Shown one piece after another: positions 11,693-63,098 of a DNA stretch of 64,000 nucleotides. The notes under the pieces were generated by a model. It did no database searches and had not been told where the DNA came from. It saw nothing but the letters and a program-made list of their open reading frames with translations. Position numbers and translations under genes: made by a program. The stretch comes from Anolis carolinensis (taxonomy: Eukaryota): NCBI RefSeq assembly GCF_035594765.1, contig NC_085842.1, forward strand, positions 20,002,782-20,066,781, in the 5' to 3' direction. Position 1 is the first letter of the stretch, and each line of letters opens with the position of its first letter.

Positions 11693-12516
11693 TCAGCAAA
11701 TGCTGAGTTTCATGTGGCAGCTTCTCTTGGTATGGACTCTCTGATGTAAAGTTAGGCTGTAACTTTGGCTGAAGCCCTTCCTGCACACGGGACAGGTGTA
11801 CGGTTTCTCTCCAGTGTGGATTCTTTTATGTCTGGAAAGGTTGGATTGGTCACGGAAACTCTTGCCACATACAGAGCAGGTATATGGCTTCTTCCCCGTG
11901 TGCATTTTTTGGTGCTCAATGAGCACTGATTTGTCGGTGAAGCTCTTGCTGCAATCTGGGCAGCGGTGTGGTTTTTCCTCCATGTGAATCTCCTGATGCC
12001 TAAGCAAGTGGGCACTCCGGACAAAGCATTTCCCACATTCCAAGCACTGATAAGGCTTCTCTCCCGTGTGGATTATTTGGTGTGACTTCAGATTGTCCTT
12101 CCGACCAAAGCATTTCCCACACTCCAAACATTTATACACCTTCTCCCCTTTTTGGATCCCTGGACGCTTAATCTTATCAGGATCCGAATTCATACATGGG
12201 TTCTCATCTGCAGAAATATTTTGATTCAAGTGTATGCTGGAACTCGTCCCATCATAAAGCATTTCACATTCAGTAATGCTTCCACTCTGATTGAAGGTCT
12301 TTTCAAACATTAAATCTTTTTTGTCCTCAGAGCAAACTGAGATTTTGTGGGAGTTTCCCACATGAAATGGGAAGTATTTGGCTGCCGGTTCTTTCGTGTG
12401 GCTTCCGTCTTGGCTCACTGGGCCTTCTTGGCTCCAAGCATTCTCCTCCAATGCTTCACACTCTGTTCTTTCTGGGGAATCCTCACCTAGTTGCCCCTCA
12501 CTTTTCCATTTATCAC
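11693..12516 (-). CDS. Gene A terminal exon: 5 C2H2 zinc fingers (spliced protein 558 aa)
   Basis: tttatttccaacag|GT acceptor; five CxxC-x12-HxxxH fingers with TGEKPY-type linkers. Confidence 0.92.
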
Positions 12517-14402
12517 CTGTTGGAAATAAAGCAGAAGACAAATTAGGGCCCATTCTCACAATGCCACCTGAAAGCTTCCCACAAAGGTTTAGGGGGAACA
12601 AGACACAGTGGTTGCTCCCAAGACTTAGGATAGTCTGAGAAAGTTTCTGAATCTTGAATAAGAGCCTAAAGGAAAATTGAACCCTATACTGTTTTTGTTA
12701 TTGACTCATTATTTTTTTATTTTGTAAAGAAACATAATACATCGAAAGTGGTGGAACAATGTATTGATAGGAAAGTGAGGGAGGTGAAAGGGTTCTGAAA
12801 ATAGGTGAAGAGAGAAAACTGGAGGGGGGAAAAAAAAGAAAGAAAGAAAAAAAACGAAAAAAAACTGGTTGACCAATAGGGAAGGGAACCCTATACTGTT
12901 TTTCTATTTTTTTCATTTCCTTCCGTTCCTTGCGCAGCATCCATTTATGTTGTTCAACAAGCTTCATGTTTATTTATTCCAATTATTTCCCTTATACAGC
13001 TCCTTCATGACATGTAACAACTGTTGTTGACCTACACTGATTATGAGATAGGTACAAGACTTTATTACAAACTAAGAGGGTTACTATGCCCACACTTCTT
13101 CTCAGGAGGTTTTTAAATAGATGGGATGGCCATCTGTCAGGGTTCTTTGGCTGTGCTTTCCTGTATGACAGAATGGAGATGAACTGGCTGGTCCTTGCGA
13201 TCTCTTCCAACTCTATGATTCTATGTCATCACAGGACCCACTGATAAGCCCATCACCCACAATATTAGAAATATTTTAAGGCCTCCAAAACAGCAAAATC
13301 CATATGTACAATATGACTTATTGACGCTTAAGGGGAAATAATCTCTCTGGGCATTTGCTAGAACCTCCAGTGTGATTCTATGGTACTCTTCCCCTGGGCA
13401 GTCTTGAACTTCTGACAGCCAGAACTGGATACAATAATCCAGGAGCAGATTGACCAGAGATGATGAGGATTTCCTGGCCAGGGGTCTGCCCATGCCATCC
13501 CTTAACTTACCCCAGGAAAGGGGAATCTTTGGCCTTCCAGATACTACAAGTTTCAGTCCCCTTTGGCATAGCATTACAGGAGCTGGGACCCCATGTACCT
13601 GGCAGACCCTTGGGCTTATTTATTATTTATTTATTTACTTACTATATTTCTACCCTGCTCTTCTCACCCCAAAGGGGACTCAGAGCAGCTTACAATTTGG
13701 CCACTTGAGTGCCACATTGCAAATACATAGTATATAAATATAATACAATACAAATCAAAGCACGTGTAACATAAAATACAAGACAAAAATCACACAAAGC
13801 ATAATGACATCCAGAAATATGATATAAATAAATATTAAGCATTAAAAAAATTAAAAACCAATTAGAATTATTGTGAGATTCATCAATTAAATAGTATATT
13901 TTGCTAAACTCATTCATCAGTGATAAACATGAGACAGCGAAAAAATTAAGAGAGGTCTCTACAAAATACACAAATAAATAAAAAATAAAGTATGAAAACA
14001 AAACAAAAAAAGTCCTCACTAAAGCCCAGGAGGAAGTGTCAAACACTTCCAAGCACTGACAAGAGAAGTGAGCAGCCCCAATCCAAGCCAAGCCTGATTT
14101 AAGTACTAAGTTGATGATCCTAGTACTGAAACATGATATATGCAGCATTTATAGGAATTTGTTTTTTCAATTAGTTCACACAAACACTCTTCATCCATCT
14201 GCCATTGGCCCGGCTCATCTGTCAAATTTTAAAACGCAATGCATCAAAAAGTTTGACTATGCTTGATATATAGACACATTTCATGGGGCTCCACAAGACA
14301 TTTTTGCTTCAAAAAGGGCTCAGCGGATTAAAAATTTGAGGACCCGTGGTCTTGGAAGAACATCCCCAACATCCAATGAAACAAACAGGCTATTCTTCTT
14401 AC

Positions 14403-14529
14403 CCAAAAGTCCAGCATCCCCGCCATCATCTTCCTGTTTGATCTCCACACTAAGCTTCTTCTGCTCAATCTCAGGCAGGGCTTGGCCAACTTCAGGGGAA
14501 CCCACCGTCTCCTCTTCCTCTAATGACAT
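14403..14529 (-). CDS. Gene A coding exon 2: 127-nt degenerate KRAB-A-like exon
   Basis: ttttag|ATG acceptor, TTG G|gtaaga donor; phase 0 to 1 links the SCAN and ZF exons in frame; conserved in all six paralogs. Confidence 0.85.
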
Positions 14530-15080
14530 CTAAAATATTTATCACTTGTTAGCCAAATGTATATTTTAAGTACATGGCTTTCCTCTGCTCTACACTGTCC
14601 TCAAAATATTTGACAGGTAGGTCACGGTCAGAGAAAATAACTAGCCCATGGTCACATGTTTCATGGTCCAGAAAGGACTTGTACCCAGATTTTGCAAGTC
14701 ACAATCTCACATTAAACTTATTGCCTGGGCATTTGATGGGGCCTGCATTCGCTCTTTGCAGGACACTCCACACGACTGCTGTATTTCAACTTTTTCTTAA
14801 ATTAAAATCTCAGTATGCCCACCTCCTCATGGGAATCTGTGGGGGAATTTTGCTGTGCTTTTCTCCTTCCATGGCTGTTTCAAGCACAAAGGAAACCTTT
14901 TATTGGGGCAGAGGGAGTGCTGGGAGATCAAAGAAGGCTCAAAGATAGCCCCATACAGGCTACAATTTACTTACCCCAGGCGTAACTACATTGCAACCCT
15001 TGCTTGATAAATGAAGGTCTGTTGGCACCTTGCCCAAAGCAGCCCTTTGGGAAGCCTGGACCCCAATGAATGGTCCTCAC

Positions 15081-15806
15081 CTGGTTCGCCTGAGGCCTGG
15101 ACTCTCGCTGCTTCTGGAGGAAGTCCTCCGCCAAGGCCACGGCCTGGGAGCAAGTCTCTAGACCACATTCCTTGACCCAGGCCTCTATCTCTGGAGGCAG
15201 GATGGCCAAGAACTGCTCCAAGACCAGCAGCTCCAGGATCTGCTCCTTCGAATGCCTTTCAGGTTTCAGCCACTGGCAACACAGCTCCTGAAGCTGGCTG
15301 TATGCTCCTTTTGGCCCCTCAGCCTCCCTGTAGCAGAACCGCCGGAAACACTGTCGCTGCTCCTCCCTCCGCATGGCATCTCCGTGCAAGATGGCGGCCT
15401 TCACTTTCCCATAATCCTCCCTGTCTTTGGCCTCCAGGCCGGTGAAGGCCCGCTTGGCCTCTCCGCTCAATGCTGGCAGGAGCCGGGGCACCCACTCTTC
15501 CTTGGGCCACCGGCAGGCTTGGGCCACTTGCTCAAAGGAGGCCAGGAAGGCTTTGGCGTCGCCCCACGGCTCCTCCCTCAACTGAGGGGCCTCCCTGTTT
15601 GGGTGAGGGCCTTCCACACTCTTCAGGAACTCCTGCAATTTGGTTTCCCACTGCTGAAGCGAGTCTTTGTCGGGTTCCTGTTCCACATCTGTAGGTCTCC
15701 TTTGAAGGAATGCCTCCGTCGTTCCAACATGGCAGCTCCCTCTCACTTCCCATGACACCTGCCCTGGTATAAGACTTGTAAGGTTTTTTTGGGTCTCCAT
15801 TTTCAT
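15081..15806 (-). CDS. Gene A coding exon 1: extended SCAN (Gag capsid-like NTD + SCAN) of an ESCAN-zinc finger protein
   Basis: ORF MKMET...[23 protein letters not shown]...RQCFRRFCY...[34 protein letters not shown]...QAVALAEDF (SCAN signature); donor CAG|gtgagg at 15080; 726 nt, phase 0. Confidence 0.92.
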
Positions 15807-16927: not shown

Positions 16928-17282
16928 CTTCTTCCCTTCAGTTTCTTTCCTCTAAATCCAAGAACTCCGCCTTAGATGTTTCTCCTTTTCCTCCAAAAAC
17001 CTCCGGGAAAGAAAAGCCAAAGGCACGAGTTTCCCAAGAAGCCGCTTTTGGAGGAGAAGCCGGACCAGGAAGAGGAGGACACGGGACACATCCGCCCAAA
17101 ACAAAGCACCGCAGGAAGTCCTCTCTAGCCACCTGTAGTTCAAGATCTCGGAGGTCTGCCTTCAAGCCGCCTTTGATCCTCCAGGCTTTTGGACTCCAAC
17201 TCCCAGAAGACCCCGCTTCCTTGGACAAAGGAACTCTGGGAACTGAAGTCAAAACTGCCTGAAAAAGAGCTTGGGAAACACT
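16928..17282 (-). promoter_or_regulatory. Gene A putative promoter and non-coding exon 1
   Basis: CpG-retaining block repeated upstream of every paralog; GAAG|gtgagg donor at 16927; ETS-like CAGGAAG and ZNF143-like ACTCCAACTCCCAGAA motifs. Confidence 0.65.
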
Positions 17283-18398: not shown

Positions 18399-20143
18399 CT
18401 CTCGTGGTGTCTTCTTGGTAAGGTCTCTCGTGGCGTCTTCTTGGTGAGGTCTCTCGTGGCGTCTTCTTGGTGAGGTCTCTCGTGGCGTCTTCTTGGTGAG
18501 GTCTCTCGTGGCGTCTTCTTGGTGAGGTCTCTCGTGGCGTCTTCTTGGTGAGGTCTCTCGTGGCGTCTTCTTGGTGAGGTCTCTCGTGGCGTCTTCTTGG
18601 TGAGGTCTCTCGTGGCGTCTTCTTGGTGAGGTCTCTCGTGGCGTCTTCTTGGTAAGGTCTCTCGTGGCGTCTTCTTGGTAAGGTCTCTCGTGGCGTCTTC
18701 TTGGTAAGGTCTCTCGTGGCGTCTTCTTGGTAAGGTCTCTCGTGGCGTCTTCTTGGTGAGGTCTCTCGTGGCGTCTTCTTGGTGAGGTCTCTCGTGGCGT
18801 CTTCTTGGTAAGGTCTCTCGTGGCGTCTTCTTGGTAAGGTCTCTCGTGGCGTCTTCTTGGTGAGGTCTCTCGTGGCGTCTTCTTGGTAAGGTCTCTCGTG
18901 GCGTCTTCTTGGTAAGGTCTCTCGTGGCGTCTTCTTGGTAAGGTCTCTCGTGGCGTCTTCTTGGTGAGGTCTCTCGTGGCGTCTTCTTGGTGAGGTCTCT
19001 CGTGGCGTCTTCTTGGTGAGGTCTCTCGTGGCGTCTTCTTGGTGAGGTCTCTCGTGGCGTCTTCTTGGTGAGGTCTCTCGTGGCGTCTTCTTGGTGAGGT
19101 CTCTCGTGGCGTCTTCTTGGTGAGGTCTCTCGTGGCGTCTTCTTGGTGAGGTCTCTCGTGGCGTCTTCTTGGTGAGGTCTCTCGTGGCGTCTTCTTGGTG
19201 AGGTCTCTCGTGGCGTCTTCTTGGTAAGGTCTCTCGTGGCGTCTTCTTGGTAAGGTCTCTCGTGGCGTCTTCTTGGTAAGGTCTCTCGTGGCGTCTTCTT
19301 GGTAAGGTCTCTCGTGGCGTCTTCTTGGTAAGGTCTCTCGTGGCGTCTTCTTGGTAAGGTCTCTCGTGGCGTCTTCTTGGTGAGGTCTCTCGTGGCGTCT
19401 TCTTGGTGAGGTCTCTCGTGGCGTCTTCTTGGTGAGGTCTCTCGTGGCGTCTTCTTGGTAAGGTCTCTCGTGGCGTCTTCTTGGTAAGGTCTCTTGTGGC
19501 GTCTTCTTGGTAAGGTCTCTCGTGGTGTCTTCTTGGTGAGGTCTCTCGTGGCGTCTTCTTGGTAAGGTCTCTCGTGGCGTCTTCTTGGTAAGGTCTCTCG
19601 TGGCGTCTTCTTGGTAAGGTCTCTCGTGGCGTCTTCTTGGTAAGGTCTCTCGTGGCGTCTTCTTGGTGAGGTCTCTCGTGGCGTCTTCTTGGTGAGGTCT
19701 CTCGTGGCGTCTTCTTGGTGAGGTCTCTCGTGGCGTCTTCTTGGTAAGGTCTCTCGTGGCGTCTTCTTGGTGAGGTCTCTCGTGGCGTCTTCTTGGTGAG
19801 GTCTCTCGTGGCGTCTTCTTGGTGAGGTCTCTCGTGGCGTCTTCTTGGTGAGGTCTCTCGTGGCGTCTTCTTGGTGAGGTCTCTCGTGGCGTCGTCTTCT
19901 TGGTAAGGTCTCTCGTGGCGTCTTCTTGGTAAGGTCTCTCGTGGCGTCTTCTTGGTGAGGTCTCTCGTGGCGTCTTCTTGGTGAGGTCTCTCGTGGCGTC
20001 TTCTTGGTGAGGTCTCTCGTGGCGTCTTCTTGGTAAGGTCTCTCGTGGCATCTTCTTGGTAAGGTCTCTCGTGGCGTCTTCTTGGTAAGGTCTCTCGTGG
20101 CGTCTTCTTGGTAAGGTCTCTCGTGGTGTCTTCTTGGTAAGGT
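18399..20143. repeat. 26-bp minisatellite, about 67 copies
   Basis: Unit CTCTCGTGGCGTCTTCTTGGT(A/G)AGGT. Confidence 0.98.
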
Positions 20144-20537
20144 TTCTTCCAAGAAATTCACTTTACCAGAACCTTCCTCTGAGGCTGAGAGAGTGGGGCT
20201 TGCCCAAGGTGAGTTCCCCTGGTTGGGGTCCTAGTTTTCCAGTCCAAAGCAGAAAACCTATGATCCTGGGATACAAGCCTGTCTGGAAGGGCCTACACAT
20301 AGGCTTAAGGTCCTCAAGATTAATGGAGGAAACCCATGAATCAAACCCTTGCAATGGGAACGCTGGAATGCAGAAATAGCCCCGTGAGGGTTGAACACGC
20401 TCAGGAGGCACACAATGGGATCGGTTTGGGGAGAGAAGAGATTCAGCAACTAGGTTAAACGTTAAGCTTATTATACTGTTAGAATTCACAGTAATCACAA
20501 AAAATATGATATGGGTTTTGTACAGTTTCTCTTAAAT

Positions 20538-21930: not shown

Positions 21931-22091
21931 GTATAGGGTATTCCTTTTTAAGATGCCACTCAGTGAGAAGACTAACAGAGCCATGCTGGCATTCAGCAAA
22001 TGCTGATTGTCGTGTGGCATATTCTCTCGTCATGGATTCTCTGACGTAAGGTGAGGCTAGTAGTTTCACTAAAGCCCTTCCCGCAGTCTGG

Positions 22092-23218
22092 TTAGGAGTA
22101 CGGTTTCCCTCTGGTGTGGATTCTCTTATGTCTGACAAAGGTGGACCGGTCATTGAAACTCGTATTGCATTCTGTACACTTATAGGACTTCTCTCCAGTG
22201 TGAATCTTCTGGTGTTTCTTGAGATGGGCACTCTGACCAAAGCATTTCCCACACTCCAAACACTGATACGGCTTCTCCCCAGTGTGAATTCTCTGGTGTG
22301 ACGTGAGGTTGCCCTTCTGACCAAAGCATTTCCCACACTCCAAGCACTGATACGGCTTCTCTCTGGTGTGGATTCTCTTATGTCTGACAAAGGTAGACCG
22401 GTCACTGAAACTCTTATTGCATTCTGTACATTTATAAAGCTTCTCCCCAGTGTGAATTTTCTGATGTGACTTGAGAGAGTAACTCCAACCAAAGCATTTC
22501 CCACACTCCAAGCATTGATACGGCTTCTCCCCAGTGTGAATCTTCTGGTGTGACGTGAGGCTGCCCTTCAGACCAAAGCATTTCCCACACTCCAAGCACT
22601 GATACGGCTTCTCTCTGGTGTGGTGTCTCTTATGTCTGAGAAAGGTGGTCTGGTCACTGAAATTCATATTGCATTCTGTACATTTATAGGGCTTCTCCCC
22701 AGTATGAATCTTTTGGTGTGACATGAGGTTGGCCTTCTGACCAAAGAATTTCCCTCTCTCCAAACGTTTAAACAGCTTTTTCCCTTTTGGGATCCCTGGA
22801 TGGTTCATCTTACCAAGATCCGAATTCATACACTGTCTCTCATCTGCAGGAATATTTTGATTCAGGTATATGTTGGAACTTGTCCCTTCATAAAGCGTTT
22901 CACATTCAGTGAGGCTTCCATTCTGATTTAATGTATTTGCAAACATTAAATCTGATTCATTCTCAGGGTGAAGTCTACTAAGAACACTGGAGAAAGCGGC
23001 CCCCTTTTTTTCTTCCTTGCTTTCCTGCTGGATTGAGATTTCGTGGGAGTCTCCCACCTGAAAGGGGAAGGATTTGGCTTCCAGCTCTTTCGTGTGGCTT
23101 CCATCTTGGCTCGCAGCCCCATCTTGGCTCCAAAAATTCTCCTTTAATGCTTCACACTCTGTTCTTTCTGGGGAATCCTCACCTGGTTGCCTCTCATTCT
23201 CACTTTTCCTTTCATCGC
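22092..23218 (-). CDS. Gene B terminal exon: 1 degenerate + 7 intact C2H2 fingers (spliced protein 661 aa)
   Basis: caacag|GC acceptor; first finger lacks both Cys (KRLERG); TAA replaces the first Cys of a final relic finger. Confidence 0.9.
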
Positions 23219-40588: not shown

Positions 40589-40907
40589 CTTCTTCCCTCT
40601 AAACCCAAGAACTCCGCCTCAGGCGTTTCTCTTTTTCCTCCAAAATCCTCCCAGAAAGAAAAACAAAAGGCACGAGTTCCTCAAGAAGCCGCGTTTGGAG
40701 GAGAAGCCGGACCAGGAAAAGGAAGACACAGCCCACATCCGCCCAAAACAAAACACCGCCGGAAGTCCTCTCTAGCCACCTGGAGTTCCAGGTCTCGGAG
40801 GTTTGCCTCAAAGCAGCCTTTGGTCCTCCAGGCTTTGGACTTCAACTCCCAGAAGCCTCCGCTCCCTTGGACAAGAATGCCTGGAAGAGCCGGGCCTGGG
40901 AAACACG
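40589..40907 (-). promoter_or_regulatory. Gene C putative promoter and non-coding exon 1
   Basis: Paralogous block with the same donor and motifs. Confidence 0.65.
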
Positions 40908-45620: not shown

Positions 45621-45747
45621 CCAAGAGTGCAGCATCCCCATCGTCATCTTCCTGTTTTGTCTCCACACTAAGCTTCTTCTGCTCCATCTCAGGCAGGGCT
45701 TGGACACCTTCAGGGGAAACCACCATCTCCTCTTCCTCTAACGACAC
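45621..45747 (-). CDS. Gene D coding exon 2: 127-nt degenerate KRAB-A-like exon
   Basis: ttttag|GTG...TTG G|gtaaga; 127 nt. Confidence 0.85.
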
Positions 45748-46287: not shown

Positions 46288-47013
46288 CTGGTTCGCCTGA
46301 CGCCTGGACTCTCGCTGCTTCTGAAGGAAGTCCTCTGCCAAGGCCACCGCCTGGGAGCAAGTCTCTGGACCACATTCCTTGACCCAGGCCTCTATCTCTG
46401 GAGGCAGGACGGCCAAGAACTGCTCCAAGACCAGCAGCTCCAGGATCTGCTCCTTCGAATGCCTTTCAGCTTTCAGCCACCGGCAACACAGTTCCTGAAG
46501 CTGCCCGTAAGCACTTCTTGGCCCCTCGGCCTCCCGGTAGCAGAAACGCCGGAAACACTGCCGCTGCTCCTCCCTCCGCATGGCATCTTCGTGCAAGATG
46601 GCGGCCTTCACTTTCCCATAATCCTCCCTGCCTTCGGCCTCCAGGCCAGTGAAGGCCCGCTTGGGCTCTCCGCTCAATGCTGGCAGGAGCCGGGGCACCC
46701 ACTCTTCCTTGGGCCACCGGCAGGCTTGGGCCACTTGCTCAAAGGAGGCCAGGAAGGCTTTGGCGTCATTCCACGGCTCCTCCCTCGACTGAGAGGTGCC
46801 CCAGTTTGGGTGAGGGCCTTCTAGGCCCTTCAGGAACTCCTGCCATTGGGTTTCCCACTGCTGAAGAGAGTCTTTGTTGGGCTCCTGTTTCACCTCCGTT
46901 GGTCTCCTTGGCAGGAATGCCTCCGTCGTCCCAACATGGCAGCTCCCTCTCACTTCCCGTGACTCTTGCCCTGGTATAAGACTTGTAAGGTCTTCTCGGA
47001 TCTCCATTTTCAT
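46288..47013 (-). CDS. Gene D coding exon 1: extended SCAN
   Basis: Paralog; CAG|gtgaag donor; 726 nt. Confidence 0.9.
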
Positions 47014-47832: not shown

Positions 47833-48197
47833 CTTTCCTTCTTGAATCTTCCCTCCAGTTTCTTCCCTCTAAACCCAAGAACTCCGCCTCAGATGTTTCT
47901 CCTTTTCCTCCAAAAAAGAAAAGCAAAAGGCACGAGTTTCCCAAGAAGCCGCGTTTGGAAGAGAAGCCGGACCAGGAAGAGGAGGACACAGGTCACATCC
48001 GCCCAAAACAAAACACCGCAGGAAGTCCTCTCTAGCCACCTGGAGTTCCAGATCTCGGAGGTTTGCCTTAAAGTGGCCTTTGGTCCTACAGGCTTTTGGA
48101 CTTCAACTCCCAGAAGCCTCCGCTTCCTTGGACAAGGAGCAGGAATTCTGGGAACTGAAGTCCAAATCTTCCTGGAAGAGCCGAGCTTGGGAAACAC
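47833..48197 (-). promoter_or_regulatory. Gene D putative promoter and non-coding exon 1
   Basis: Paralogous block; homologous donor altered, candidate AAAG|gtgggt at 47832. Confidence 0.55.
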
Positions 48198-49443: not shown

Positions 49444-50621
49444 TTAAGGTGCTACTAGACTGATTGTTGGATTAGGTGGAGAGACTAACACAGTCATGCC
49501 AGTATTCAGCTGGTTATTCCCACTGATATTTGTGTGGCAGCTTCTTTGGCCGTGAATTCTTTGATGTAAAGTCAGGTTGGTACTTTGCCTGAATCCCTTC
49601 CCGCACTCTGCACAGGTGTACGGTTTCTCTCCGGTGTGGATTCTCTTATGTCTAACAAGGCTGGACTGATCACGGAAGCTCTTACCACATTCGGAGCAGG
49701 AAAATGGCTTCTCCCCTGTGTGAATCCGTTGATGGAAGCTTAGGCTTCCCTGGTGGCTGAAACTTTTTTCACACTCTATACATTTATAGGGCTTCTCCCT
49801 GCTGTGGATTACCTGGTGTGATTTGAGATGGGTACTCCGACCAAAGCATTTATCACACTCCAAGCATTGATACGGCTTCTCCCCAGTGTGGATTATCTCG
49901 TGTGACTTAAGATGGGCACTCCGGCCAAAGCATTTCCCACACTCCAAGCACTGATACGGTTTCTCCCCGGTGTGCATCTGTTGATGTAAGCTAAGGCTTC
50001 CATGGTGGCTGAAACCCTTTCCGCACTCTGTACATTTATAGGGCTTCTCCCTGGTGTGGAGTACCTGGTGTGACTTGAGATGGGCACTCCGACCAAAGCA
50101 TTTCCCACATTCGGAGCACTGGTACGGCTTCTCTCCTGTGTGAATTATCTGGTGAGACAAGAGATGGGTCTTCCGACCAAAGCATTTCTCACACTCCAAA
50201 CATTTATACAGCTTCTCCTCTTTTTGGATCCTTGGATGTTTCATCTTATCAGGATTTGAATTCATAAACTGTCTCTCATCTGCAGAAATACTTTGATTCC
50301 AGTATATGTTGGAACCTGTCCCTTCAGAAAGTGTTTCACATTCACTGGATTTGTCCTCAGAGTGAATTCTCCAATGAACTGTGGGGAAAGCAGTCTCATT
50401 TGTTTCTTTCCATCTTTCCTGCTGAACTGAGATTTTGTGGAAGTCTCCCAACTGAAATGGGAAAGATTCGGCTTTCACCTCCTCCAGGTGGCTTTCACTT
50501 CCTCCATTTTTGCTCGCTGGCCCGTCTTGGCTCCAAACATTTTCCTTCAATGCTTCACACTCTGTTCTTTCTGAGGAATCCCCACCTAGTTGCCCCTCAT
50601 TCTCACTTTTCAATTCATCAC
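49444..50621 (-). CDS. Gene E terminal exon: 8 intact C2H2 fingers (spliced protein 676 aa)
   Basis: caacag|GT acceptor; eight canonical fingers, open to the stop at 49444. Confidence 0.92.
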
Positions 50622-51668: not shown

Positions 51669-51795
51669 CCAAGGGTCCAGTATCCCCGTCGTCATCTTCC
51701 TGTTTGATCTCCACACTAAGCTTCTTCTGCTCCATCTCAGGCAGGGCTTGGACACCTTCAGGAGAACCCGCCGTCTCCTCTCCCTCTAACGGCAC
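51669..51795 (-). CDS. Gene E coding exon 2: 127-nt degenerate KRAB-A-like exon
   Basis: ttttag|GTG...TTG G|gtaaga; 127 nt. Confidence 0.85.
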
Positions 51796-52364: not shown

Positions 52365-53090
52365 CTGGTTTGCCTGCCTCCTGGCCTCTCGCTGTCTCTG
52401 GAGGAAGTCCTCCGCCAAGGCCACCGCCTGGGAGCAAGTCTCTGGACCACATTCCTTGACCCAGGCCTCTATCTCTGGAGGCAGGACGGCTAAGAACTGC
52501 TCCAAGACCAGCAGCTCCAAGATCTGCTCCTTCGAATGCCTTTCAGCTTTCAGCCACCGGCAACACAGTTCCTGGAGCTGCCCGTAAGCCCCTCTCGGCC
52601 CCTCGGCCTCCCGGTAGCGGAAACACCGGAAGCACTGCCGCTGCTTCTCCCTCCGCATGGCATCCCCGTGCAAGATGGCGGCCTTCACTTTCCCATAATC
52701 CTCCCTGCCTTCGGCCTCTAGGCCAGGGAAGGCCCGCTTGGCCTCTCCGCTCAATGCTGGCAGGAGCCGAGGCACCCACTCTTCCTTGGGCCACCGGCAG
52801 GCTTGGGCCACTTGCTCAAAGGAGGCCAGGAAGGCTTTGGCGTCGTCCCACGGCTCCTCCCTCGACTGAGAGATGCCCCAGTTTGGGTGAGGGCCTTCCA
52901 CGCTCTTCAGAAACTCCTGCCATTGGGTTTCCCACTGTTTAAGAGAGCCTTCGTCAGTTTCCTGTTTCACCTCCGCTGGTCTCCTTTGCAGGAATGCCTC
53001 CATTGTCGCAACATGGCAGCTCCCTCTCACTTCCCTTGGCACCTGCCCTGGTATGTGACTTATAAGGTGTTCCCGGGTCTCCATTTTCAT
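52365..53090 (-). CDS. Gene E coding exon 1: extended SCAN
   Basis: Paralog; CAG|gtgagg donor; 726 nt. Confidence 0.92.
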
Positions 53091-53679
53091 CTTTGGATAG
53101 TAGCCCGAAACTGTGGGGAATGCTAGACTCTACTGGAGCATTATAAACATCAGCATGAAGCTTTCTGCCTGGAAAACCGAAAGAAAAAAAAGAGGAATAT
53201 TGCACGACATTTACATTCAAAGAGGAAGAGTTATGAAAGCAAAGATGCAGGGCTGGAATGGAACTGGTCATTAAGTAGGTAACCATGAAAAGATCAAAAC
53301 AGGATAGTCATGGGGGGTATTTTCCTTAATTTACTGCAAAAACAGAAAACCATGGATGACAGAGAACTTTATTGAAATGAATGACTCTGCCAACAAACAG
53401 TTGCCCTGGAGAATCGAGGCCAGGAGTGTCTATCCCATTTTTATTAAGGGCTACATCAGCTTTACGGCTGCCTTTAAACGGCCATTGAGACCATGGATAG
53501 AGAATCTGTGGATACAGAGGGAAGCTATAATTCTTCTACATAGTGTTTGATACTCTTTAGTTTTAACCTGCTGCGCCACAGGCTAATAATAATAATAAAA
53601 TTTTATTTTATACCCTGCCCCATCTCCCTGAGGGGACTCAAGAGTGGCTTACAACACTTGCAGCAGCTAATATAAGAAG

Positions 53680-53973
53680 CTTAGAATCTAATATAAGAGA
53701 TTTAGAAGTCAGAAAAGTGGAACAAAAAATAGGTGTATGTGCCGATGACTTAATGCTACTGATGGAAAACCAAGCAGATTATTAGTTGCATTAAACCAGT
53801 TGTTAAGGGATTATGGCACAATATGAGGACCTAAGGTCAACAAAGAAAAAAAAATAAAATAAAATTTGCAACAGACAAAAACTGATGGAAGATTCAGGAT
53901 TTCAAATAGACAGAAAAGTGAAATACTTGGGAATTTGGCTGACAGACGTGTCAACAATATTTAAAAACAATTA
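53680..53973 (+). mobile_element. Degenerate L1-type RT fragment
   Basis: xADDLML and VKYLGIWLT motifs. Confidence 0.6.
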
Positions 53974-54423
53974 CAGTAGAATCTCACTTATCTAACATAA
54001 ACGGGCTGACAGAATGTTGGATAAATGAAAATGTTGGATAATAAGGAGAGTTTAAGGAGAAGCCTATTAAATGTCAAATTATGTTATGATTTTACAAATT
54101 AAGCACCAAAACAAATCGACAGAAAAAAAACAGTTCAGTACATGGTAATATTATGTAGTAATTACTGTATTTACAAATTTAGCACCAAAACATCGCAATG
54201 TATTGGAAAAATTGACTACAAAAACATTGGCTACTAACAAATTGACTACAAATAAAGATAGAATTACAGAAAATGAACTTACAGTAACAACATTGTTGGA
54301 ACTTAAATGCATCAAAAGTTCAGTCCTTACTGCCTAGAGAAACAGCTGTGGATCCGGGCGGGAGGCAAACTGCATTGGATAATCCAGAGCGTTGGATAAG
54401 TGAAAGTTGGATAAGTAAGACTC

Positions 54424-54852
54424 GCCCCCAGTGGCACAGTATTTATTTATTTATTTGACTTGTATACCGCTACTCCCAGTTTGGCTCGGAGCGGTTTACA
54501 GAAACAGATTAAAACAAAGTGCTGTTAAAGTGCTGAGCTGCTGAACAGAGTGCTGTTAAAGTGTTGAGCTGCTGAACTTGTGGACCAAAAGGTTGCCGGT
54601 TTGAATCCAGGGAGCGGAATGAGCGCCCACTGTTAGCCCCAGCTTCTGCCAACCTAGTATTTTGGAAACATGCAAATGTGGGTAGATAAATAGGTACCGC
54701 TCCTAGGTAATGGCGCTCCATGCAGTAATGCCAGCCACATGACCTTGGAGGTGTCTACAGACAACGCCGGCTCTTCGGCTTAGAAATGGAGATGAGCACC
54801 AACCCCCAGAGGCAGATATGACTGGGCTTAACGTCAGGGGAAACCTTTACTT
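54424..54852 (+). mobile_element. Sauria SINE with a short L2-type tail inserted near its 5' end
   Basis: tRNA-like head, GTTAGCCCCAGCTTCTGCC body, ...GTCAGGGGAAACCTTTAC tail. Confidence 0.8.
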
Positions 54853-55441
54853 TATGTCCAATTATGTTACTGAACCACAACTGCCACGACTTTTGGCCAC
54901 GTGCCGTGCGACCGGGGGATAATGGGAATCGCAAGGCAACTGCATTGGTGGCTCTGAGGTTGGAGAATGTTTAAAGGGAATTTTAAAGCCAGGCCTCACA
55001 CCCACAAGGCTTGTATCTCAATAGAGACCCCACTCTTCCAATTAAAGAGAACAAGCTACAGCCTTCCAGATGTTACTGTATCACAACTCCCATCAGCTCC
55101 AGTCCTGATGTCTAATGATGAGGAATACAGGAGTTTCAGAGCGGAAATACAGGAGTTGTAGATGAGAAGGAACACATTAAATGACATGGAAGGCCACAGT
55201 CAGCATGTGGGCCTTGGGTTTGATATATATGACCTAGTGTAGGTCTGGGCAAACCTTGGCCCTGCAGGTGTTTTGGACTTCAACTCCCACCATTCCTGAC
55301 AGCCTCAGGCCCCTTCCTTTTCCCCCTCAGCCGCTTAAGCTGTCAGGAATGGTGGGAGTTGAAGTCCAAAACACCTGCAGGGCCAAGGTTTGCCTTTTGA
55401 GGTGCAACATTTCCCATCAGATCCTCTCCTCTTCCACTCAC

Positions 55442-55912
55442 CTTCCTCCCTCCAGTTTCTTCCCTCTAAATCCAAGAACTCCGCCTCAGACGTTTCTCCT
55501 TTTCCTCCACAAACCTCCGAGAAAGAAATGTAAAATACACGAGTTTCCCAAGAACCCGCTTTTGGAGGAGGAAGAGGAGGACACAGGCCACAACCTTGCA
55601 AAATAAAACACCGCAGGAAGTCCTCTCTAGCCAAATCTCTGGAAGTTGGAGTCCAAAATTCTGGAGGACCAAAGGCGGCTTGAAGGCAAACCTCCGAGAT
55701 CTGGAACTACAGGTGGCTAGAGAGGACTTCCTGGAGTGTTTTGGGCGGATGTGGCCGGTGTCCTGCTCTTCCTGGTCCGGCTTCTCCTCCAAAAGCGGCT
55801 TCTTGGGAAACTCGTGCCTTTTGCTTTTCTTTCTCGGAGGTTTTTGGAGGAAAAGGAGAAACGCCTGAGGCGGCGTTCTTGGGTTTAGAGGGAAGAAACT
55901 GGAGGGAGGAAG
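55442..55912. promoter_or_regulatory. Putative bidirectional promoter: divergent first exons of genes E (-) and F (+)
   Basis: Two inverted copies of the exon-1 block about 80 nt apart; outward-facing donors GAAG|gtgagt (55441, -) and GAAG|gtaagt (55913, +). Confidence 0.7.
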
Positions 55913-55941
55913 GTAAGTCCAGGCGGCTGTGATGGGAAATG

Positions 55942-56472
55942 GGGTTGTTGTATGTTTTCCGAGCTCTCTGGCCATGTTCCAGAAGTATTCTCTCCTGACG
56001 TTTCGCCCACATCTATGGCAGGCATCCTCAGAGGTTGTGAGGTATGGAGAAAACTAAGCAAGGAAGGGTTATATATATATCTGTGGAAAGTCCAGGATGA
56101 GAGAAGAATTCTTGTCTGTTGGAGGCCAGTGTGAATGTTGTAGTTAATCACCTTAATTAGCATTGAATAGCTTCATATCCTGGTTTCTTCCTGCCTGGGG
56201 CATCCTTTGTTCAGAGTCGTTAGCTGCCCCTGGTTGATTCATGTCTGGAACTCCTCTGTTTTCAGAGTGTTGCTTCTCATTTACTGCTCTGATTTTGGAG
56301 TTTTTTTTAATGCTGATAGCCAAATTTTGTTCATTTTCATGGTTTCCTCCTTTCTGTTGAAATTGCCCACATGCTTGTGGATTTCAATGGCTTCTCTGTG
56401 TAGTCTGACATGATAGTTGTTGGAGTGGTCGAGCATTTCTGTGTTCTCAAATAATATACTGTTTCCAGGCCC
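55942..56472 (-). mobile_element. 5'-truncated Penelope-like element in gene F intron 1
   Basis: GIY-YIG endonuclease C-terminus ILFENTEMLDHSNNYHVRLHREAIEIHKHVGNFNRKEE followed by a pseudo-LTR. Confidence 0.85.
55994..56034 (-). ncRNA. Minimal type-I hammerhead ribozyme (Penelope-associated)
   Basis: Intact core identical to 2587-2627. Confidence 0.8.
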
Positions 56473-56954
56473 CATGCTGGGGGATGCTGGGAATGGCAGT
56501 TTTACAAGGTCTTTTCCTTAAAAAAAAATAATTTTATTAAATTTTTATACTACATCAAAAGGGTGAGAACAACCAAGGTATAGAAAAGTAAGAAAAAGAG
56601 AGAAAGATAAAACTCTACAATCTACAAAATATACCCACACACCAAAAATAAAAAAATATATAAAAATGACTTCCATTCCATCTGCTTGGATAATATTTTC
56701 TTATTATTCAATAATATTTTTTCTTACTAAAGAGCTATCCTGATCCTATAGCATTGAGCCTGGCAGTTAAAAGGGGAACCAAATTGCATTCATTTGCCAG
56801 TGGAGATGCACCCTCAGTTTGTTTACATTTTAAAGTGTATTTTCTGTATGTTTTAGTTGAGTTGTCCTGCATTTTAAAGTTGTGGGAGGAAAATAGGGAT
56901 AATAAATAAGTAAAGGTAAATGTTTTTCCCTGACATTAAGTCTAGTCATTTCCA

Positions 56955-59692
56955 ACACCTGTTGGAGATACCCAAAGAGGACAAAATCATCCTCCTGGGT
57001 GATTTTAATGCGAGAGTTGGACTTGGACCTGTGGCCAGGGATTATAGGAAAAGATGGGGTTGGAAACAGCAACCCAAATGGCATCCCACTTCTCACCAAA
57101 TGTGCACCAACCTTGTCATCACAGACACACTCTTTCACCAGGCAAACAAGCTTAAGACATTATGGAAGCACCCGGTCAAAGCATTGGCACCTCTGAGACT
57201 ATGTAACTATACGTGCCAGAGACCGCCGTTATGTGCTCCACACAAGAGCATAACAGTCACTTCTGGTGTGAGAGAATTGGCTGTCTGCAAGGACGTTGCC
57301 CAAGGGACACGCGGATGTTTTGATATTTTTACCATCCTGTGGGAGGCTTCTCTCATGTTCCCGCATGGAGCTGGAGGTGATAGAGGGAGCTCATCCACGC
57401 TCTTCCCGGGTTGGATTTGAACCGGCAACCTTCAGGTCAGCAACCCAATCTTCCAAGTCACAAGGCTTTAACCCACTATGCCACTGGGGGCTCTTTAACA
57501 GATGCTGCTGACTGCTGGACAGACCATTGGTTAACTCGATGCACGATGGCCATCAAGATCGCCCCCAAACACAGACTCCAAAGAAGAAAGATAAGCCGTA
57601 AAATGAACATCCAAGCCCTTTAAGAGCCCTCTAAATGAGCCCTTCTTCAAACAACATTCAAGGATCATCTACCCTTAGAACACCCTGAAAATGTTGAGGA
57701 ATGTTGAAACAAACTGAAGACCGCCATCGAACTGATGGAGGCTCCTTCTTTGGAGGCTTTTAAGCAGAGGCTGGATGGCCATCTGTCGGGGGTACTTTAA
57801 ATGCAATTTCCTGCTTCCTGGCAGGGAGTTGGACTGGCTGGCCCATGAGGTCTCTTCCAACTCTATTATTCTATGATTCTACAGCCTGCGAATAAACCCT
57901 TGGGTACCAAACTAAGAAACATCAAGAGTGGTTTTATGAAAATGATAACTAGATCCAGTAGTTAATCGATAAGAAAAGGAAAACCTTCAAAATATGGCAG
58001 AGAAACACCAACTCCGCTCCAAAGAAAAAGATCTATGCCAGTGTGAAAGGTGAGGTCCAAAGAAGGACCAGAGAACTCAACAAAATCTGGTGGACAAAAA
58101 GGCCCAAGAAATCCAACACTTTGCAGATATCCATGATGCATGGGGATTCTTTAAAGCCACAAAAGTCATCTATGGCCCAAGAAATCATGGCATACATGAT
58201 CTGTGTTAATCAGATGGAAGCAAACTTCTGAAGGATAAAAAAATAAATTCCACTACACTAAGAGCACAACCACAACCTCCCTAACCTCCCTAGCACTGGC
58301 TAGTCTGAAGGAAGTCAGCAAAGCCATCAGCCAACTAAAAAATAACAAAGCCAGAGGACCTGAGGGGATCCCTGTTGACAGGGAAAGGCAGACCTTTCCC
58401 ATCTTTTCTCCCATACCTTTCTTTTATTATTTTACTGTAAATCTTAATGATTTTTTTTTTAAAAAAGAGGGTGGACCTGAGCTGAGACCACAACTCCATC
58501 AGCTTATTGAGAAAGTGTGGGCAACTGAGAAAATCCCAGCGGAGTTCACATCATCAACCTTTTCAAAAAAGGGGATAGAACAGATTGCGGAAACTATAGG
58601 GTAATCTCCCTTCTAACCTCCGCTGGGAAATGTCTTGCAAAAATCCTTGCAAACCACTTTCTACCTATTTCAGAAGACATCCTCCTAGAGTCAGAATTGC
58701 CCCAACCTTATTCTCCGTCTTATAATAATAACAATAATAACCTTATTCTTATATCCTGCCACCATCTCCCCGAAGGGACTCAGGGCAGCTCACATGGGGA
58801 CGGGCCCAACAAAACATAGGTTAAAAACACAGTCTTCATTGCTATGATACTACGCCTTGTTGATGGGAAGCTCCCCATCGGCGTGGAAATTGTCTATTAG
58901 ACAGATGGCAAGCTATTTAACTTCAGCAGACTGAAAGCCAAAACCAAGGTCAAAACAACATCAGTTATAGACCCCAGTATGATAATGTAGTCTGTGCTCA
59001 TTCAGAAGAAGACCTACAAGTCACTCTAAACACCTTTGCAGAAGCATACAAAAAGTTTGGCCTCTCACTGAGCATCGAGAAACTCTTCCAGCAGGCACCA
59101 GCCAATCCCTCTGCAATGCCTGAAATACAGCTTAATGGTGTAACATTAGAAAATACTGACCATTTCCACTCCCTTGGCATCAACTTCTCCATAAAAGTTA
59201 ACATCAACACTGAAATACTACACCGTCTGAGCACTGCGAGTGCAGCATTTTCTCAAATGAAGCAGAGTGTTTGTAGATCGGGACATTCGTAGGGATTCTA
59301 AGATGCATGTTTATAAAGCTATTATCTCGCAACCCTATTATACACCTGCAAAACGTGGACCCTCTACAGACGTCACACTCAACTTCTGCATTCTATCAGC
59401 ATTGCCTCCGAAAAATTCTGCAAATCTCTTGAGAAGACAGGAGGACAAATGTCAGCATGCTGGAAGAAGCAAAGACCACCAGCATCAAAGTGATGATCCT
59501 TCACCATCCAATTTACTGGGAAAGCCATATTGTCCGAATACCTGATCACTGTCTGCCAAAGCAGTTACTATACTCAACTCAAGAATGGAAAACGGAGTGT
59601 TGATTGATAGGAAAAAGAGATTTAAAGAAGGGCTTATAGACAACCTTAAAAACTGTGGCATAGACAATGAGAAATGGGAAGCCCTGGCCCTC
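56955..59692 (+). mobile_element. Degenerate RTE-clade LINE (endonuclease to RT) with nested SINE (about 57255-57493, -), CR1 tail (about 57735-57882) and L2 tail
   Basis: KIILLGDFNARVG, NLVITDTLF, KGDRTDCGNYRVISLL motifs; many frameshifts. Confidence 0.85.
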
Positions 59693-60217
59693 CAGATGCT
59701 GGACTACACCTTCTGTATTTCTCATCATTAGACATCAGGACTAGAGCTGATGGGAGTTGAGATAAAGTAACAGCTCGAAAACTACTGTTTGTTCTGTTTA
59801 GTCAGGATAGTGGCGTGGCATTTAAGAGAGAAGGCCTGTGGATAAGATGTCTGACTGTGAAATGCCCTGTAACTTTTTCCTAACTTCAGAGCCATAAGTA
59901 CTCTTGGGTTGCGATTCCTATTAAGTGGTGGGAGTTGTTATTCAATAACACCTGAGGACCCAAACTAGATAAAAACTAAAGAGTACCAAACACTATGTAG
60001 AAGAATTATAGCTTTCCCTCTGTATTCACAGATTCTCTATCCATGGTCTCAATGGCCGTTTAAAGGCAGCCATAAGGCTGATGTAGCCCTTAATAAAAAC
60101 GGGATTGACACTCCTGGCCTCAATTCTCCAGGGCAACTGTTTGTCGGCAGAGTCATTCATTTCAATAGGGTTCGCTGTTTTCCACAGTTTTGTTTTTGCA
60201 GTACATTACGGAAAATA

Positions 60218-60540
60218 CAGTAGAGTCTCACTTATCCAAGCTAAATGGGCCAGCAGAAGCTTGGATAAGCGAATATCTTGGATAATAAGGAAGGATTAAG
60301 GAAAAGCCTATTAAACATCAAATTAGGTTATGATTTTACAAATTAAGCACCAAAACTTCATGTTATACAATAAATTTGACAGAAAAAGTAGTTCAATACG
60401 CAGTAATGTTATGTTGTAATTACTGTATTTACGAATTTAGCACCAAAATATCATGATATATTGAAAATATTGACTCCAAAAATGGCTTGGATTATCCAGA
60501 GGCTTGGATAAGCGAGGCTTGGATAAGTGAGACTCTACTG
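60218..60540. mobile_element. Tc1/Tigger-like MITE in gene F intron 1
   Basis: TA TSD; empty paralogous site gaaaaTAcccc in gene E near 53315. Confidence 0.9.
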
Positions 60541-60783
60541 TACCCCCGATGGATACAGAGATCTGACTGTCCTGTTTGATCTTTTCATGCTTACCTACTT
60601 AATGACCAGTTCCACTCCAGCCCTGCATCTTTGCTTTCATAACTCTTCCTCTTTAAAATGTGAATGTTGTGCAATATTCCTCTTTTTTTTCTTTCAGTTT
60701 TCTAGGCAGAAAGCTTCATGCTGATGTTTATAATGCTCCAGTAAAGTCTAGCATTTCCCACAGTTTCAGGCTACTTTCCAAGG

Positions 60784-61515
60784 ATGAAAATGGAGACCCG
60801 GGAACACCTTACAAGTCACATACCAGGGCAGGTGCCAGGGGAAGTGAGAGGGAGCTGCCATGCTGGGACAACAGAGGCATTCCTGCAAAGGAGACAAATG
60901 GAGGTGAAACAGGAACCTGACGAAGGTTCACTTCAGCAGTGGGAAACCCAATGGCAGGAGTTCTTGAAGAGCTTGGAAGGCCCTCACCCAAACCAGGACA
61001 CCTCCCAGTCGAAGGAGGAGCCATGGGACGACACCAAAGCCTTCCTGGCCTCCTTTGAGCAAGTGGCCCAAGCCTGCCGGTGGCCCAAGGAAAAGTGGGT
61101 GCCCCGGCTACTGCCAGCTTTGAGCGGAGAAGCCAAGAGGGCCTTCATTGGCCTGGGGGCCGAAGGCAGGGAAGATTATGGGAAATTGAAGGCTGCCATC
61201 TTGCACGGGGATGCCATGCGGCGGGAGGAGCAGCGGCAGTGTTTCCGGCGTTTCCGCTACCGAGAGGCCAAGGGCCCGAGAGAGGCTTACGGGCAGCTTC
61301 AGGAACTGTGTTGCCGGTGGCTGAAAGCTGAAAGGCATTCGAAGGAGCAGATCCTGGAGCTGCTGATCATGGAGCAGTTCCTGGCCATCCTGCCTCCAGA
61401 GATAACAGCCTGGATCAAGGAATGTAGTCCAGAGACTTGCTCCCAGGCAGTGGCCTTGGCAGAGGACTTCCTCCAGAAGCAGTGTGAGCAAGAGTCCAGG
61501 AGGCAGGCAAACCAG
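60784..61515 (+). CDS. Gene F coding exon 1: extended SCAN (inverted paralog)
   Basis: MKMETREH...; CAG|gtgggt donor; 732 nt; polypyrimidine acceptor near 60680-60705. Confidence 0.9.
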
Positions 61516-61548
61516 GTGGGTTTCTAGGCTTCCCAAATGGCTGATTCG

Positions 61549-61683
61549 NNNNNNNNNNNNNNNNNNNNNNNNNNNNNNNNNNNNNNNNNNNNNNNNNNNN
61601 NNNNNNNNNNNNNNNNNNNNNNNNNNNNNNNNNNNNNNNNNNNNNNNNNNNNNNNNNNNNNNNNNNNNNNNNNNNNNNNNNNN
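61549..61683. other. Assembly gap (135 N) in gene F intron
   Basis: Run of N. Confidence 1.
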
Positions 61684-62066
61684 TTGTTATTATTATTAAA
61701 CTTTATTTGTACCCCGCTAGCATCTCCCGAAGGACTCGATGCGGCTTACAAAGGCCAAGGCCTCAACACACAATATAACAATACAAAACAAAAGGCAAAT
61801 TAAAAACAATTAAAACAGTATAAACAACAAGCAATAAACAATACGCTAAAACACAATAAAACTGGGCCGGGCCAGAGTAATGGGTACAAGATTAAAAGTG
61901 CTGATGTGACAGGTGATATATAAGGCTTCTAGGGCAAGTGCAGAGTGCGATATACGATCTAGTTCTAATAAAGTGCTTATGGGACTTGGAGTTGGAGATT
62001 TCCTATTAATCTGGGAAGGCACATTGGAACAGCCAGGTCTTCAAGTTCTTTCTGAAGACTGCCAAT
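61684..62066 (-). mobile_element. L2-clade LINE 3' end
   Basis: FRKNLKTWLFQCAF on the - strand, stem-loop tail and (AAT)n. Confidence 0.7.
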
Positions 62067-62971
62067 GTAACTATTATATAATAGTTATAACATATTGTAC
62101 ATACATATAATATTCATATTATATTGTAATACAATATAATACTAATAATACAATATAAAATTAATTATATATTATATTTTACATGTAATATTACTAATAA
62201 TACTACAATATATTGATACAGTACAATATAGTAATTTATTACCAGTATTGTACTGTGCTAATATAATATTGTATGTAAATTTAATTTGTAAGCCGCTCTG
62301 AGTCCTCTTTGGGGTGAGAAGGGCGGCATATAAATGTAGCTAATAAATAAATAAAACAGGGTGGCAGTATGTTTAAGTCTGGAATGAATAAAGTGTAACC
62401 TGTATGGGGCTATCTTTGAGTTTCTTAGGTCTCCCAGCATTCCCTCTGCACCATTAGTTAACCCTCAGTTTACTTTGTGGTTTTAAAAAGGCTTCTTTTG
62501 TGCCTGAAACAGCCATGGAAGGAGAAAAATATGTCAAAATTGCCTCACAAATGCCCATAAAGAGATGAGGGTTACTGAAGGATATGAGTTTTAAATGACA
62601 TTTTAGTTTATTTGCTGCCTTTTAATTCTGTTTTTACCACACTGTTATTGCATTGTTTTTAAACTTTTGTATTGTTCTTTCTAAACTGTTGTTTAGATGT
62701 TAGCCGCCTTGAATCTCATGGGGAGAAAGGTGGGATATAAATAACGATTTATTATTATTTATGAAAAGTTGACATATAGTATGGGCAAAGAATACCTTGC
62801 ATAGAGCAAATGCAGCTGTCATCAAATGCCCAGGCAGTAGTTTTCATGTGAGATTGTGACTTGCGAGATCTGGATTCAAGTCCCTTCTGGACCACGAAAT
62901 GCATTGTGTAAGTCAGAGGAAAGCCAAATATGTGAGATATGCATTTGACTAACAAGTGATAAATATTTTAG

Positions 62972-63098
62972 GTGCAGTTAGAGGAAGAGGAGATGTCGGG
63001 TTCCCCTGAAGCTGGTCAAGCCCTGCCTGAGATAGAGCAAAAGAAGCTTCGTCTGGCGACCAAACAGGAAAATGACGACAGGAATGCTGGACCCTTTG
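62972..63098 (+). CDS. Gene F coding exon 2: 127-nt degenerate KRAB-A-like exon; ZF exon expected beyond the window
   Basis: ttttag|GTG...TTT G|gtaaga; 127 nt; downstream intron homologous to other paralogs up to the window end. Confidence 0.85.

Follow-up and report, generated by a model that had tools for sequence, protein, structure and literature searches.

The extended SCAN domain (ESCAN) is said to be the ancestral, full-length, capsid-derived form of the SCAN domain that is fused to zinc-finger genes in Anolis, and truncated SCAN is reportedly the only form found in mammals. To our knowledge, ESCAN proteins are the only host zinc-finger proteins that retain both capsid lobes. Here we analyze a cluster of ESCAN zinc-finger genes in a stretch of 64,000 nucleotides of Anolis carolinensis DNA (NCBI RefSeq assembly GCF_035594765.1, contig NC_085842.1, positions 20,002,782 to 20,066,781 of the forward strand; this whole stretch is called the window, and all positions below are counted from its first letter). 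The Anolis ESCAN genes, the Gmr1-like Gag from which they derive and the proposal that they target capsids or retroelements (Emerson and Thomas 2011, J Virol 85:12043) are summarized in passages of PMC3406341 and PMC4592553. The genes of the cluster are members of this 2011 A. carolinensis ESCAN set: the species is the same, a full capsid (CA)-derived domain is followed by tandem C2H2 fingers, and nothing essential differs. The array is located downstream in the same gene in five of the six genes, and that of the sixth lies outside the window. The finding is real and already known. A sequence-only reading of the window had linked the genes to Gmr1-like Gag and to Anolis ESCAN, which is correct according to these passages of PMC3406341 and PMC4592553; its functional proposal (co-assembly with Gag or capsid-like lattices, together with DNA binding) restates that of Emerson and Thomas (2011) as it is summarized there. 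Added here are the confident prediction of both lobes, fold matches to the lobes of Arc and PEG10, and selection estimates for the cluster. Our results confirm and slightly sharpen known biology, the N-lobe being, according to the model, folded, selected and Arc-like.

Mammalian SCAN zinc-finger proteins likewise carry C2H2 arrays after SCAN and are found in tandem clusters. Their SCAN domains (ZNF174, 1y7q; ZNF24, 3lhr; MZF1, 2fi2) are 42-52% identical to those of the cluster, with template modeling (TM) scores of 0.69-0.84. However, according to the literature they possess no N-lobe, and many of them carry KRAB, whereas the cluster genes do not. Human SCAN zinc-finger proteins were reported in a preprint to bind subfamilies of transposable elements and to anchor nucleosomes, in most cases independently of TRIM28. 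This preprint also describes a marked expansion of SCAN zinc-finger genes in squamates and notes that Gmr1-like elements are depleted in reptiles. KRAB zinc-finger proteins, which are thought to target transposons, also form fast-duplicating tandem C2H2 clusters with diversified contact residues. Unlike them, the cluster has no KRAB in any exon or frame, and therefore recruitment of TRIM28 is not expected. With Arc, dArc1, PEG10 and other domesticated Ty3/Gypsy Gag proteins, ESCAN shares, as far as the model goes, a two-lobed helical CA module, although the identity is only 13-18% and there is no sequence-profile match. In contrast to them, ESCAN possesses neither an N-terminal assembly domain nor a nucleocapsid, and it is linked to a DNA-binding array in the same protein. 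SCAN is omitted from a survey of domesticated capsid genes published in 2024, and no structural study of the ESCAN N-lobe was found in the literature searched. ESCAN genes stand midway between the capsid gene of a retrotransposon and the extensive family of SCAN transcription factors.

The domain preceding SCAN

An exon beginning with MKMET (exon A) is present in six copies in the window, five on the minus and one on the plus strand, as revealed by a six-frame motif scan and the list of open reading frames (ORFs). Copies 2-6 are 81-84% identical to copy 1 in the alignment. All six contain a Pfam SCAN domain (PF02023) at residues 148-235 (expectation values (E) of 1e-38 to 3e-40; profile scores of 130-136 bits with a cut-off of 27), and residues 1-147 match no Pfam family at E≤1. 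Note that all searches and structure predictions described here were performed with single exons or parts of exons.

The motif singled out in the sequence-only reading is found directly upstream of SCAN in all six copies of exon A. The region from residue 80 to residue 147, hereafter referred to as the extension, is contiguous with SCAN in the same exon and in the same frame, in all six copies as well as in over 100 homologues from squamates, and in nearly every homologue the extension motif precedes the SCAN motif by 67 residues. Among the six copies, 56 of the 68 columns are invariant. When 118 squamate sequences are aligned, conservation reaches at least 90% in 30 of the 68 columns of the extension, compared to 33 of 88 for SCAN. 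Furthermore, a second conserved helix is located upstream of the extension (residues 45-64; e.g., 15615-15674 on the minus strand for gene 1), and W53, E54, Q56, Q58, F60 and L61 of this helix are kept in at least 90% of the 118 sequences. The conserved region before SCAN is therefore ~100 residues long. It had been described as ~65 conserved residues in the same exon before every SCAN; its presence holds for all six copies, and only its length has to be corrected. The upstream helix (WE.QWQEFLK) is amphipathic; it is modeled with a confidence of 65-80 and lies outside the matches to the Arc N-lobe described below.

The ratio of nonsynonymous to synonymous substitution rates (dN/dS) was estimated pairwise among the six paralogues by the Nei-Gojobori method. 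The extension has a dN/dS of 0.24 and the lowest dN of all regions (0.033), SCAN (residues 148-235) has 0.25 and the upstream helix (residues 45-66) 0.20. The corresponding value is 0.46 for the N-terminal tail (residues 1-44) and ~1.8 for the loop comprising residues 67-79, which offers very few sites. The extension and SCAN are thus under purifying selection.

A word search revealed 1380 relatives. The best 120 of these 1380 are all from squamates, and the closest among these 120 are A. carolinensis proteins annotated as 'SCAN domain-containing protein 3' or 'uncharacterized'. Over 119 residues, gene 1 shares 99% identity with H9GUM9_ANOCA, a protein of A. carolinensis. In a word search with the extension profile among candidates of 63-200 amino acids, 27 matches were found, all of them from squamates, and neither Gag fragments nor short mammalian SCAN proteins were among these 27. 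This hints that the extension may be restricted to squamates within this size class.

Exon A was modeled with AlphaFold2 using the 118-sequence alignment. The predicted local distance difference test (pLDDT) score exceeds 90 over residues 80-240. In the model, the extension comprises four to five helices, located at residues 84-97, 102-112, 115-122, 126-130 and 132-155, the last of which is long and runs on into SCAN. At the sequence level, exon A matches PDB entries with residues 146-234 only, the matching proteins being the SCAN domains of ZNF174, ZNF24, MZF1, PEG3 and Zfp206. When the whole model was compared to PDB with Foldseek, SCAN structures ranked first, in line with the five-helix fold of SCAN, which resembles the C-terminal domain of CA (3lhr_A, TM score 0.84, root-mean-square deviation (rmsd) 1.7, E=7.7e-6; further matches were 2fi2, 4bhx and 4e6s), followed by the two-lobed CA of Arc (7r24_A, 153 columns, probability 1.00, E=0.02; also 7r23_A and 6gse). 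Because SCAN has only ~88 residues, the 153-column alignment with Arc includes the extension. Capsid proteins of murine leukemia virus (MLV) and human immunodeficiency virus (HIV) and dArc1 appeared among the lower-ranked matches, at low probability.

To look at the extension alone, residues 39-152 were folded separately (pLDDT of 79 overall and ~90 in the domain) and compared with Foldseek to 350,542 PDB chains. The top seven of these chains are all lobes of domesticated Ty3/Gypsy capsids, matched at weak E values: the human Arc N-lobe (6tnq_C, probability 0.99; 6tno_A, TM score 0.71, rmsd 2.1 Å, 61 columns; 6tq0_O, TM score 0.75, rmsd 2.0 Å; 6tq0_G, TM score 0.70, rmsd 2.4 Å, 64 columns), the CA-like domain of PEG10 (7lga_A) and the C-terminal domain of Arc (7r24_A and 7r1z_A). 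The match covers the Arc N-lobe almost entirely. The extension superposes on it with an rmsd of 2.0-2.4 Å over 61-64 columns, and the whole module aligns with Arc CA over 153 columns. The two-lobed CA fold, for which a comparison of exon A with Ty3 and Arc capsids had been proposed as a check, was thus obtained in the model, and a structural counterpart of the extension among CA N-lobes does exist, at weak E values. Taken together, the models support the view that the extension folds as a domain, is under selection and has the N-lobe fold of Ty3/Gypsy-type capsids, and that a two-lobed CA-like module precedes the diversified zinc-finger arrays. The proposed resemblance to the N-terminal domain of the Gypsy Gag capsid is therefore to be understood as one of fold, with the lobes of Arc and PEG10 in the first seven places; there is no sequence or profile match in Pfam or PDB. 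Homology of the extension to Gmr1-like Gag itself rests on the literature.

Indeed, no Gag or capsid sequence family (Retrotrans_gag, Arc_capsid_dom, PNMA and similar) was detected in exon A at E≤1. One of 111 extensions matched Arc_capsid_dom with E=0.08, which is at chance level. The most frequent Pfam match of the extensions was the EF-hand family (12 members, best E=0.016), which we consider to be due to chance. An hhalign comparison of the extension and SCAN profiles revealed no lobe-lobe similarity, as only the 5 residues common to both alignments were aligned.

Gene architecture and paralogue history

Each gene consists of three coding exons, i.e., the ESCAN exon, a 127-nt exon encoding an acidic linker (exon B) and the zinc-finger exon. 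Exon B and the zinc-finger exon were located in the units by tblastn with two annotated Anolis proteins as queries, and the exon order and the consensus splice sites agree with annotated A. carolinensis proteins. Exon A ends with a consensus donor (...CAG/GT) in all six copies. A polypyrimidine-AG acceptor is found ~90 nt upstream of the ATG in every exon A, and therefore an untranslated 5' exon probably exists upstream of it. Exon B has a ttttag/ acceptor and a G/GTAAG-type donor (phase 0 to 1) and matches no Pfam family, as scanned on paralogues. The zinc-finger exon starts at a conserved aacag/G acceptor. In all 16 exons seen, the frames are open and the splice sites are consensus. The locus had been read as a six-gene cluster of full proteins. 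All six ESCAN exons are indeed there; however, five genes are complete, and the sixth, of which the ESCAN and linker exons are present, is cut by the end of the window. A six-frame motif scan of the whole window revealed no KRAB A-box, CCHC knuckle, protease or reverse transcriptase motifs, and no Pfam KRAB domain was found in exon A, exon B or the zinc-finger exon. The gene starts have no CpG island.

The gene units share 80-91% DNA identity, which extends over their exons as well as their introns. With a divergence of 9-20% in both, they are real paralogues rather than an assembly duplication. The closest pair is genes 2 and 3, with 94% identity in the zinc-finger exon. In a maximum likelihood tree with 23 rows, which leaves out ~100 other homologues, the six copies are joined by two further A. 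carolinensis paralogues in a clade (support 100/100) from which the other A. carolinensis ESCANs and the sampled ESCANs of 13 other species, including A. sagrei, are excluded. Judged from these sequences, the cluster appears to be a young, lineage-specific expansion in A. carolinensis.

In the zinc-finger exon, a linker of 126-182 residues is followed by C2H2 fingers, of which genes 1-5 encode 5, 7, 7, 7 and 8, respectively. Both the number of fingers and the base-contact residues differ between paralogues. The arrays have a periodicity of 252 bp, corresponding to three fingers, with 76-86% identity between periods (22099-22765, 32112-32675, 43638-44235 and 49707-50218). They have grown by duplication of a three-finger block, composed of one 'CTEC...RHKR' finger and two subsequent 'CLECGKCFG' fingers. 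Past the stop codon of genes 3 and 4, an intact-looking C2H2 finger is present out of frame (31942-32004 and 43464-43526, respectively, both on the minus strand). The short C-terminal tails of the two proteins, WVEAL (gene 3) and WGEAL (gene 4), resemble the TGEKPY linker read in another frame, and the arrays of both genes have therefore been shortened by frameshifts. Such changes are the usual birth-and-death pattern of zinc-finger arrays.

Possible role of the N-lobe

We consider it quite probable (roughly 80%) that the locus is a lineage-specific tandem cluster of ESCAN C2H2 transcription factors in which the N-lobe serves as a second interaction surface. The zinc fingers would give each paralogue its own DNA target of ~15-24 bp. 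SCAN would mediate homo- and heterodimerization, as in the solved mammalian SCAN dimers; this domain is reportedly a domain-swapped dimer. The retained N-lobe would then act as a second protein-protein surface, either for peptide binding or for higher-order self-association, rather than being a relic. It is read as an interaction surface because it is conserved and its Arc N-lobe relatives are all peptide-bound modules. The targets would probably be transposon-derived sequences, with the proteins acting on chromatin without KRAB and TRIM28, by analogy to human SCAN zinc-finger proteins; of the possible functions, such a role in chromatin at DNA of transposon origin requires the fewest assumptions. 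Whether the N-lobe binds peptides or Gag, or drives the formation of oligomers beyond the SCAN dimer, is a question that was posed in 2011 for the same species.

Several points weigh against this interpretation. The fold matches of the extension are weak (E values of 0.17-3), no capsid family was found in a Pfam scan of 111 extensions at E≤10, none of the PDB sequences was matched by the extension profile at E≤10, and a Foldseek search of the extension against the viral structures in BFVD yielded only noise. Gene 6 is only partly contained in the window and is interrupted by an assembly gap. Furthermore, the DNA targets, dimerization, expression and any role of the N-lobe are what we infer for these proteins.

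The same structural data might also be explained if the extension were a structural cap that stabilizes the SCAN fold or dimer in squamates and has no interaction role of its own, mammals having replaced the cap or dispensed with it. The continuity of the last extension helix with the first SCAN helix in the model fits this explanation, as do the similar selection on the extension and SCAN and the fact that mammalian SCAN domains fold and dimerize without the extension in solved structures. However, conservation in squamates equals that of SCAN over a 68-residue domain and additionally includes the upstream helix, which exceeds the needs of a cap, and the nearest structural relatives, Arc N-lobes, bind peptides (the matched entries are ligand complexes). 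We therefore regard a mere cap as possible but doubtful. A function at the level of the capsid, in which ESCAN proteins would assemble together with the Gag of Gmr1-like or Gypsy elements or form capsid-like lattices of their own and thus restrict retroelements besides binding DNA, seems unlikely to us. This proposal draws on the two-lobed CA-like module with both lobes under purifying selection, on the coincidence of the squamate SCAN zinc-finger expansion with the reported depletion of Gmr1-like elements in reptiles, and on a prediction, cited in PMC4592553, of binding to Gmr1-like sequences by some of the SCAN zinc-finger proteins of Anolis. Nevertheless, the window contains no nucleocapsid CCHC knuckle, the SCAN dimer is reportedly stable and domain-swapped (Ivanov et al. 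2005), with a geometry unlike that of capsid C-terminal contacts, the lobes are joined in the model by one continuous helix (residues 132-155) rather than by a flexible linker, and a nuclear protein that binds DNA with 5-8 fingers would hardly be expected to serve as a lattice subunit.

A hybrid restriction factor, whose N-lobe would allow higher-order, capsid-like or Gag-poisoning assemblies and which would disturb Gag particles in addition to recognizing retroelement DNA, is still more improbable in our opinion; if it existed, it could explain the depletion of Gmr1-like elements where ESCAN genes expanded. Finally, the out-of-frame fingers following genes 3 and 4, the degenerate first finger of genes 2 and 3 and the single assembly gap could be taken as signs of decaying pseudogenes or of an artefactual multiplication of one gene during assembly. 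This can hardly be the case, since all 16 exons seen are open with consensus splice sites, the domains have dN/dS values of 0.2-0.25 and a divergence of 9-20% between the copies is seen in introns as well as in exons.

Features of the window, gene 6 and repeats

The coordinates of the features are given in Table 1. The window has a G+C content of 44%.

Table 1. Features of the ESCAN zinc-finger gene cluster (positions in the window; exon A, ESCAN exon; exon B, acidic linker exon; AF2, AlphaFold2)
Feature	Position	Strand	Evidence
Gene 1 exon A (ESCAN, 242 codons, ATG to CAG/GT)	15081-15806	-	ORF, donor, Pfam SCAN E=3e-40, AF2
Gene 1 N-lobe-like extension (residues 80-147)	15366-15569	-	AF2, Foldseek, dN/dS 0.24
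Gene 1 exon B	14403-14529	-	tblastn, splice sites
Gene 1 zinc-finger exon (5 C2H2 fingers, stop included)	11693-12516	-	Acceptor aacag/G at 12516; Pfam zf-C2H2 E=1.9e-33
Gene 2 exon A (ESCAN)	24581-25312	-	ORF, Pfam SCAN, alignment, donor
Gene 2 N-lobe-like extension	24872-25075	-	Register of gene 1; no indels before column 234
Gene 2 exon B	23900-24026	-	tblastn, splice sites
Gene 2 zinc-finger exon (7 fingers and a degenerate first finger without its cysteines)	22092-23218	-	
Gene 3 exon A (ESCAN)	35524-36255	-	ORF, Pfam SCAN, alignment, donor
Gene 3 N-lobe-like extension	35815-36018	-	Motif position, alignment
Gene 3 exon B	34843-34969	-	tblastn, splice sites
Gene 3 zinc-finger exon (7 fingers and a degenerate first finger)	32006-33147	-	
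Gene 4 exon A (ESCAN)	46288-47013	-	ORF, Pfam SCAN, alignment, donor
Gene 4 N-lobe-like extension	46573-46776	-	Motif position, alignment
Gene 4 exon B	45621-45747	-	tblastn, splice sites
Gene 4 zinc-finger exon (7 fingers)	43612-44621	-	
Gene 5 exon A (ESCAN)	52365-53090	-	ORF, Pfam SCAN, alignment, donor
Gene 5 N-lobe-like extension	52650-52853	-	Motif position, alignment
Gene 5 exon B	51669-51795	-	tblastn, splice sites
Gene 5 zinc-finger exon (8 fingers)	49444-50621	-	
Gene 6 exon A (ESCAN), head-to-head with gene 5	60784-61515	+	ORF, Pfam SCAN, alignment, donor
Gene 6 N-lobe-like extension	61021-61224	+	ORF, alignment
Assembly gap in intron 1 of gene 6 (135 N)	61549-61683	unstranded	
Gene 6 exon B	62972-63098	+	tblastn, splice sites, collinearity
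Copies of the ~300-bp element upstream of genes 1-5	16955-17213, 27489-27722, 40602-40899, 47872-48190, 55469-55885		

The ATGs of the head-to-head genes 5 and 6 are 7.7 kb apart (interval 53091-60783), and the exon A regions of the two genes form an inverted duplication with 91% DNA identity. In gene 6, the frame reading through the exon A donor stops at 61525-61527, and the assembly gap, the only run of N in the window, starts 33 nt past this donor. The 30 nt preceding the gap correspond to positions 17-46 of the paralogue intron and the sequence following it to positions ~95-554, in the same order. Both flanks belong to one intron and no coding frame crosses the gap; the assignment of exons A and B to one gene depends on a correct scaffold join. 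Intron 1 of gene 6 is ~0.9 kb longer than in the paralogues owing to a repeat insertion. An interspersed repeat of ~300 bp is found in this intron (62072-62355) and at 686-985, with 80% identity between the copies, and its 70-bp tail is present at ~8 other sites of the window. The repeat beside the gap may have caused this break in the assembly. From the collinearity of gene 6 with gene 4, its zinc-finger exon would be expected near 64068, i.e., beyond the window, and the end of exon B at 63098 explains where the region delimited in the sequence-only reading ends.

Two minisatellites are present in the window. The one at 18399-20147, 2.6 kb upstream of the gene 1 ATG, comprises 67 copies of a 26-bp unit (with a 78-bp super-unit) with 98% identity; its G+C content is 0.56 and its observed/expected CpG ratio ~1, no other part of the window being rich in CpG, and it yields spurious ORFs of 558 and 589 amino acids. 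The other one (5027-6091; 17 copies of a 63-bp unit, 97% identity) yields a spurious ORF of 411 amino acids. An ORF located between genes 5 and 6 (56920-57420, plus strand) resembles by eye the endonuclease of long interspersed nuclear elements (LINEs) and has no Pfam match. Intron 2 of gene 3 carries a reverse transcriptase fragment (33767-34273, plus strand; Pfam RVT_1, E=1.2e-6, just under the cut-off), which is a LINE remnant. A repeated element of ~300 bp is found 1-4 kb upstream of each of genes 1-5; it may be a promoter, a 5' exon or a transposon. Note that the A. carolinensis gene model LOC134295839 uses a copy of this element instead of the zinc fingers as its C-terminal coding sequence, which is probably a mis-annotation.

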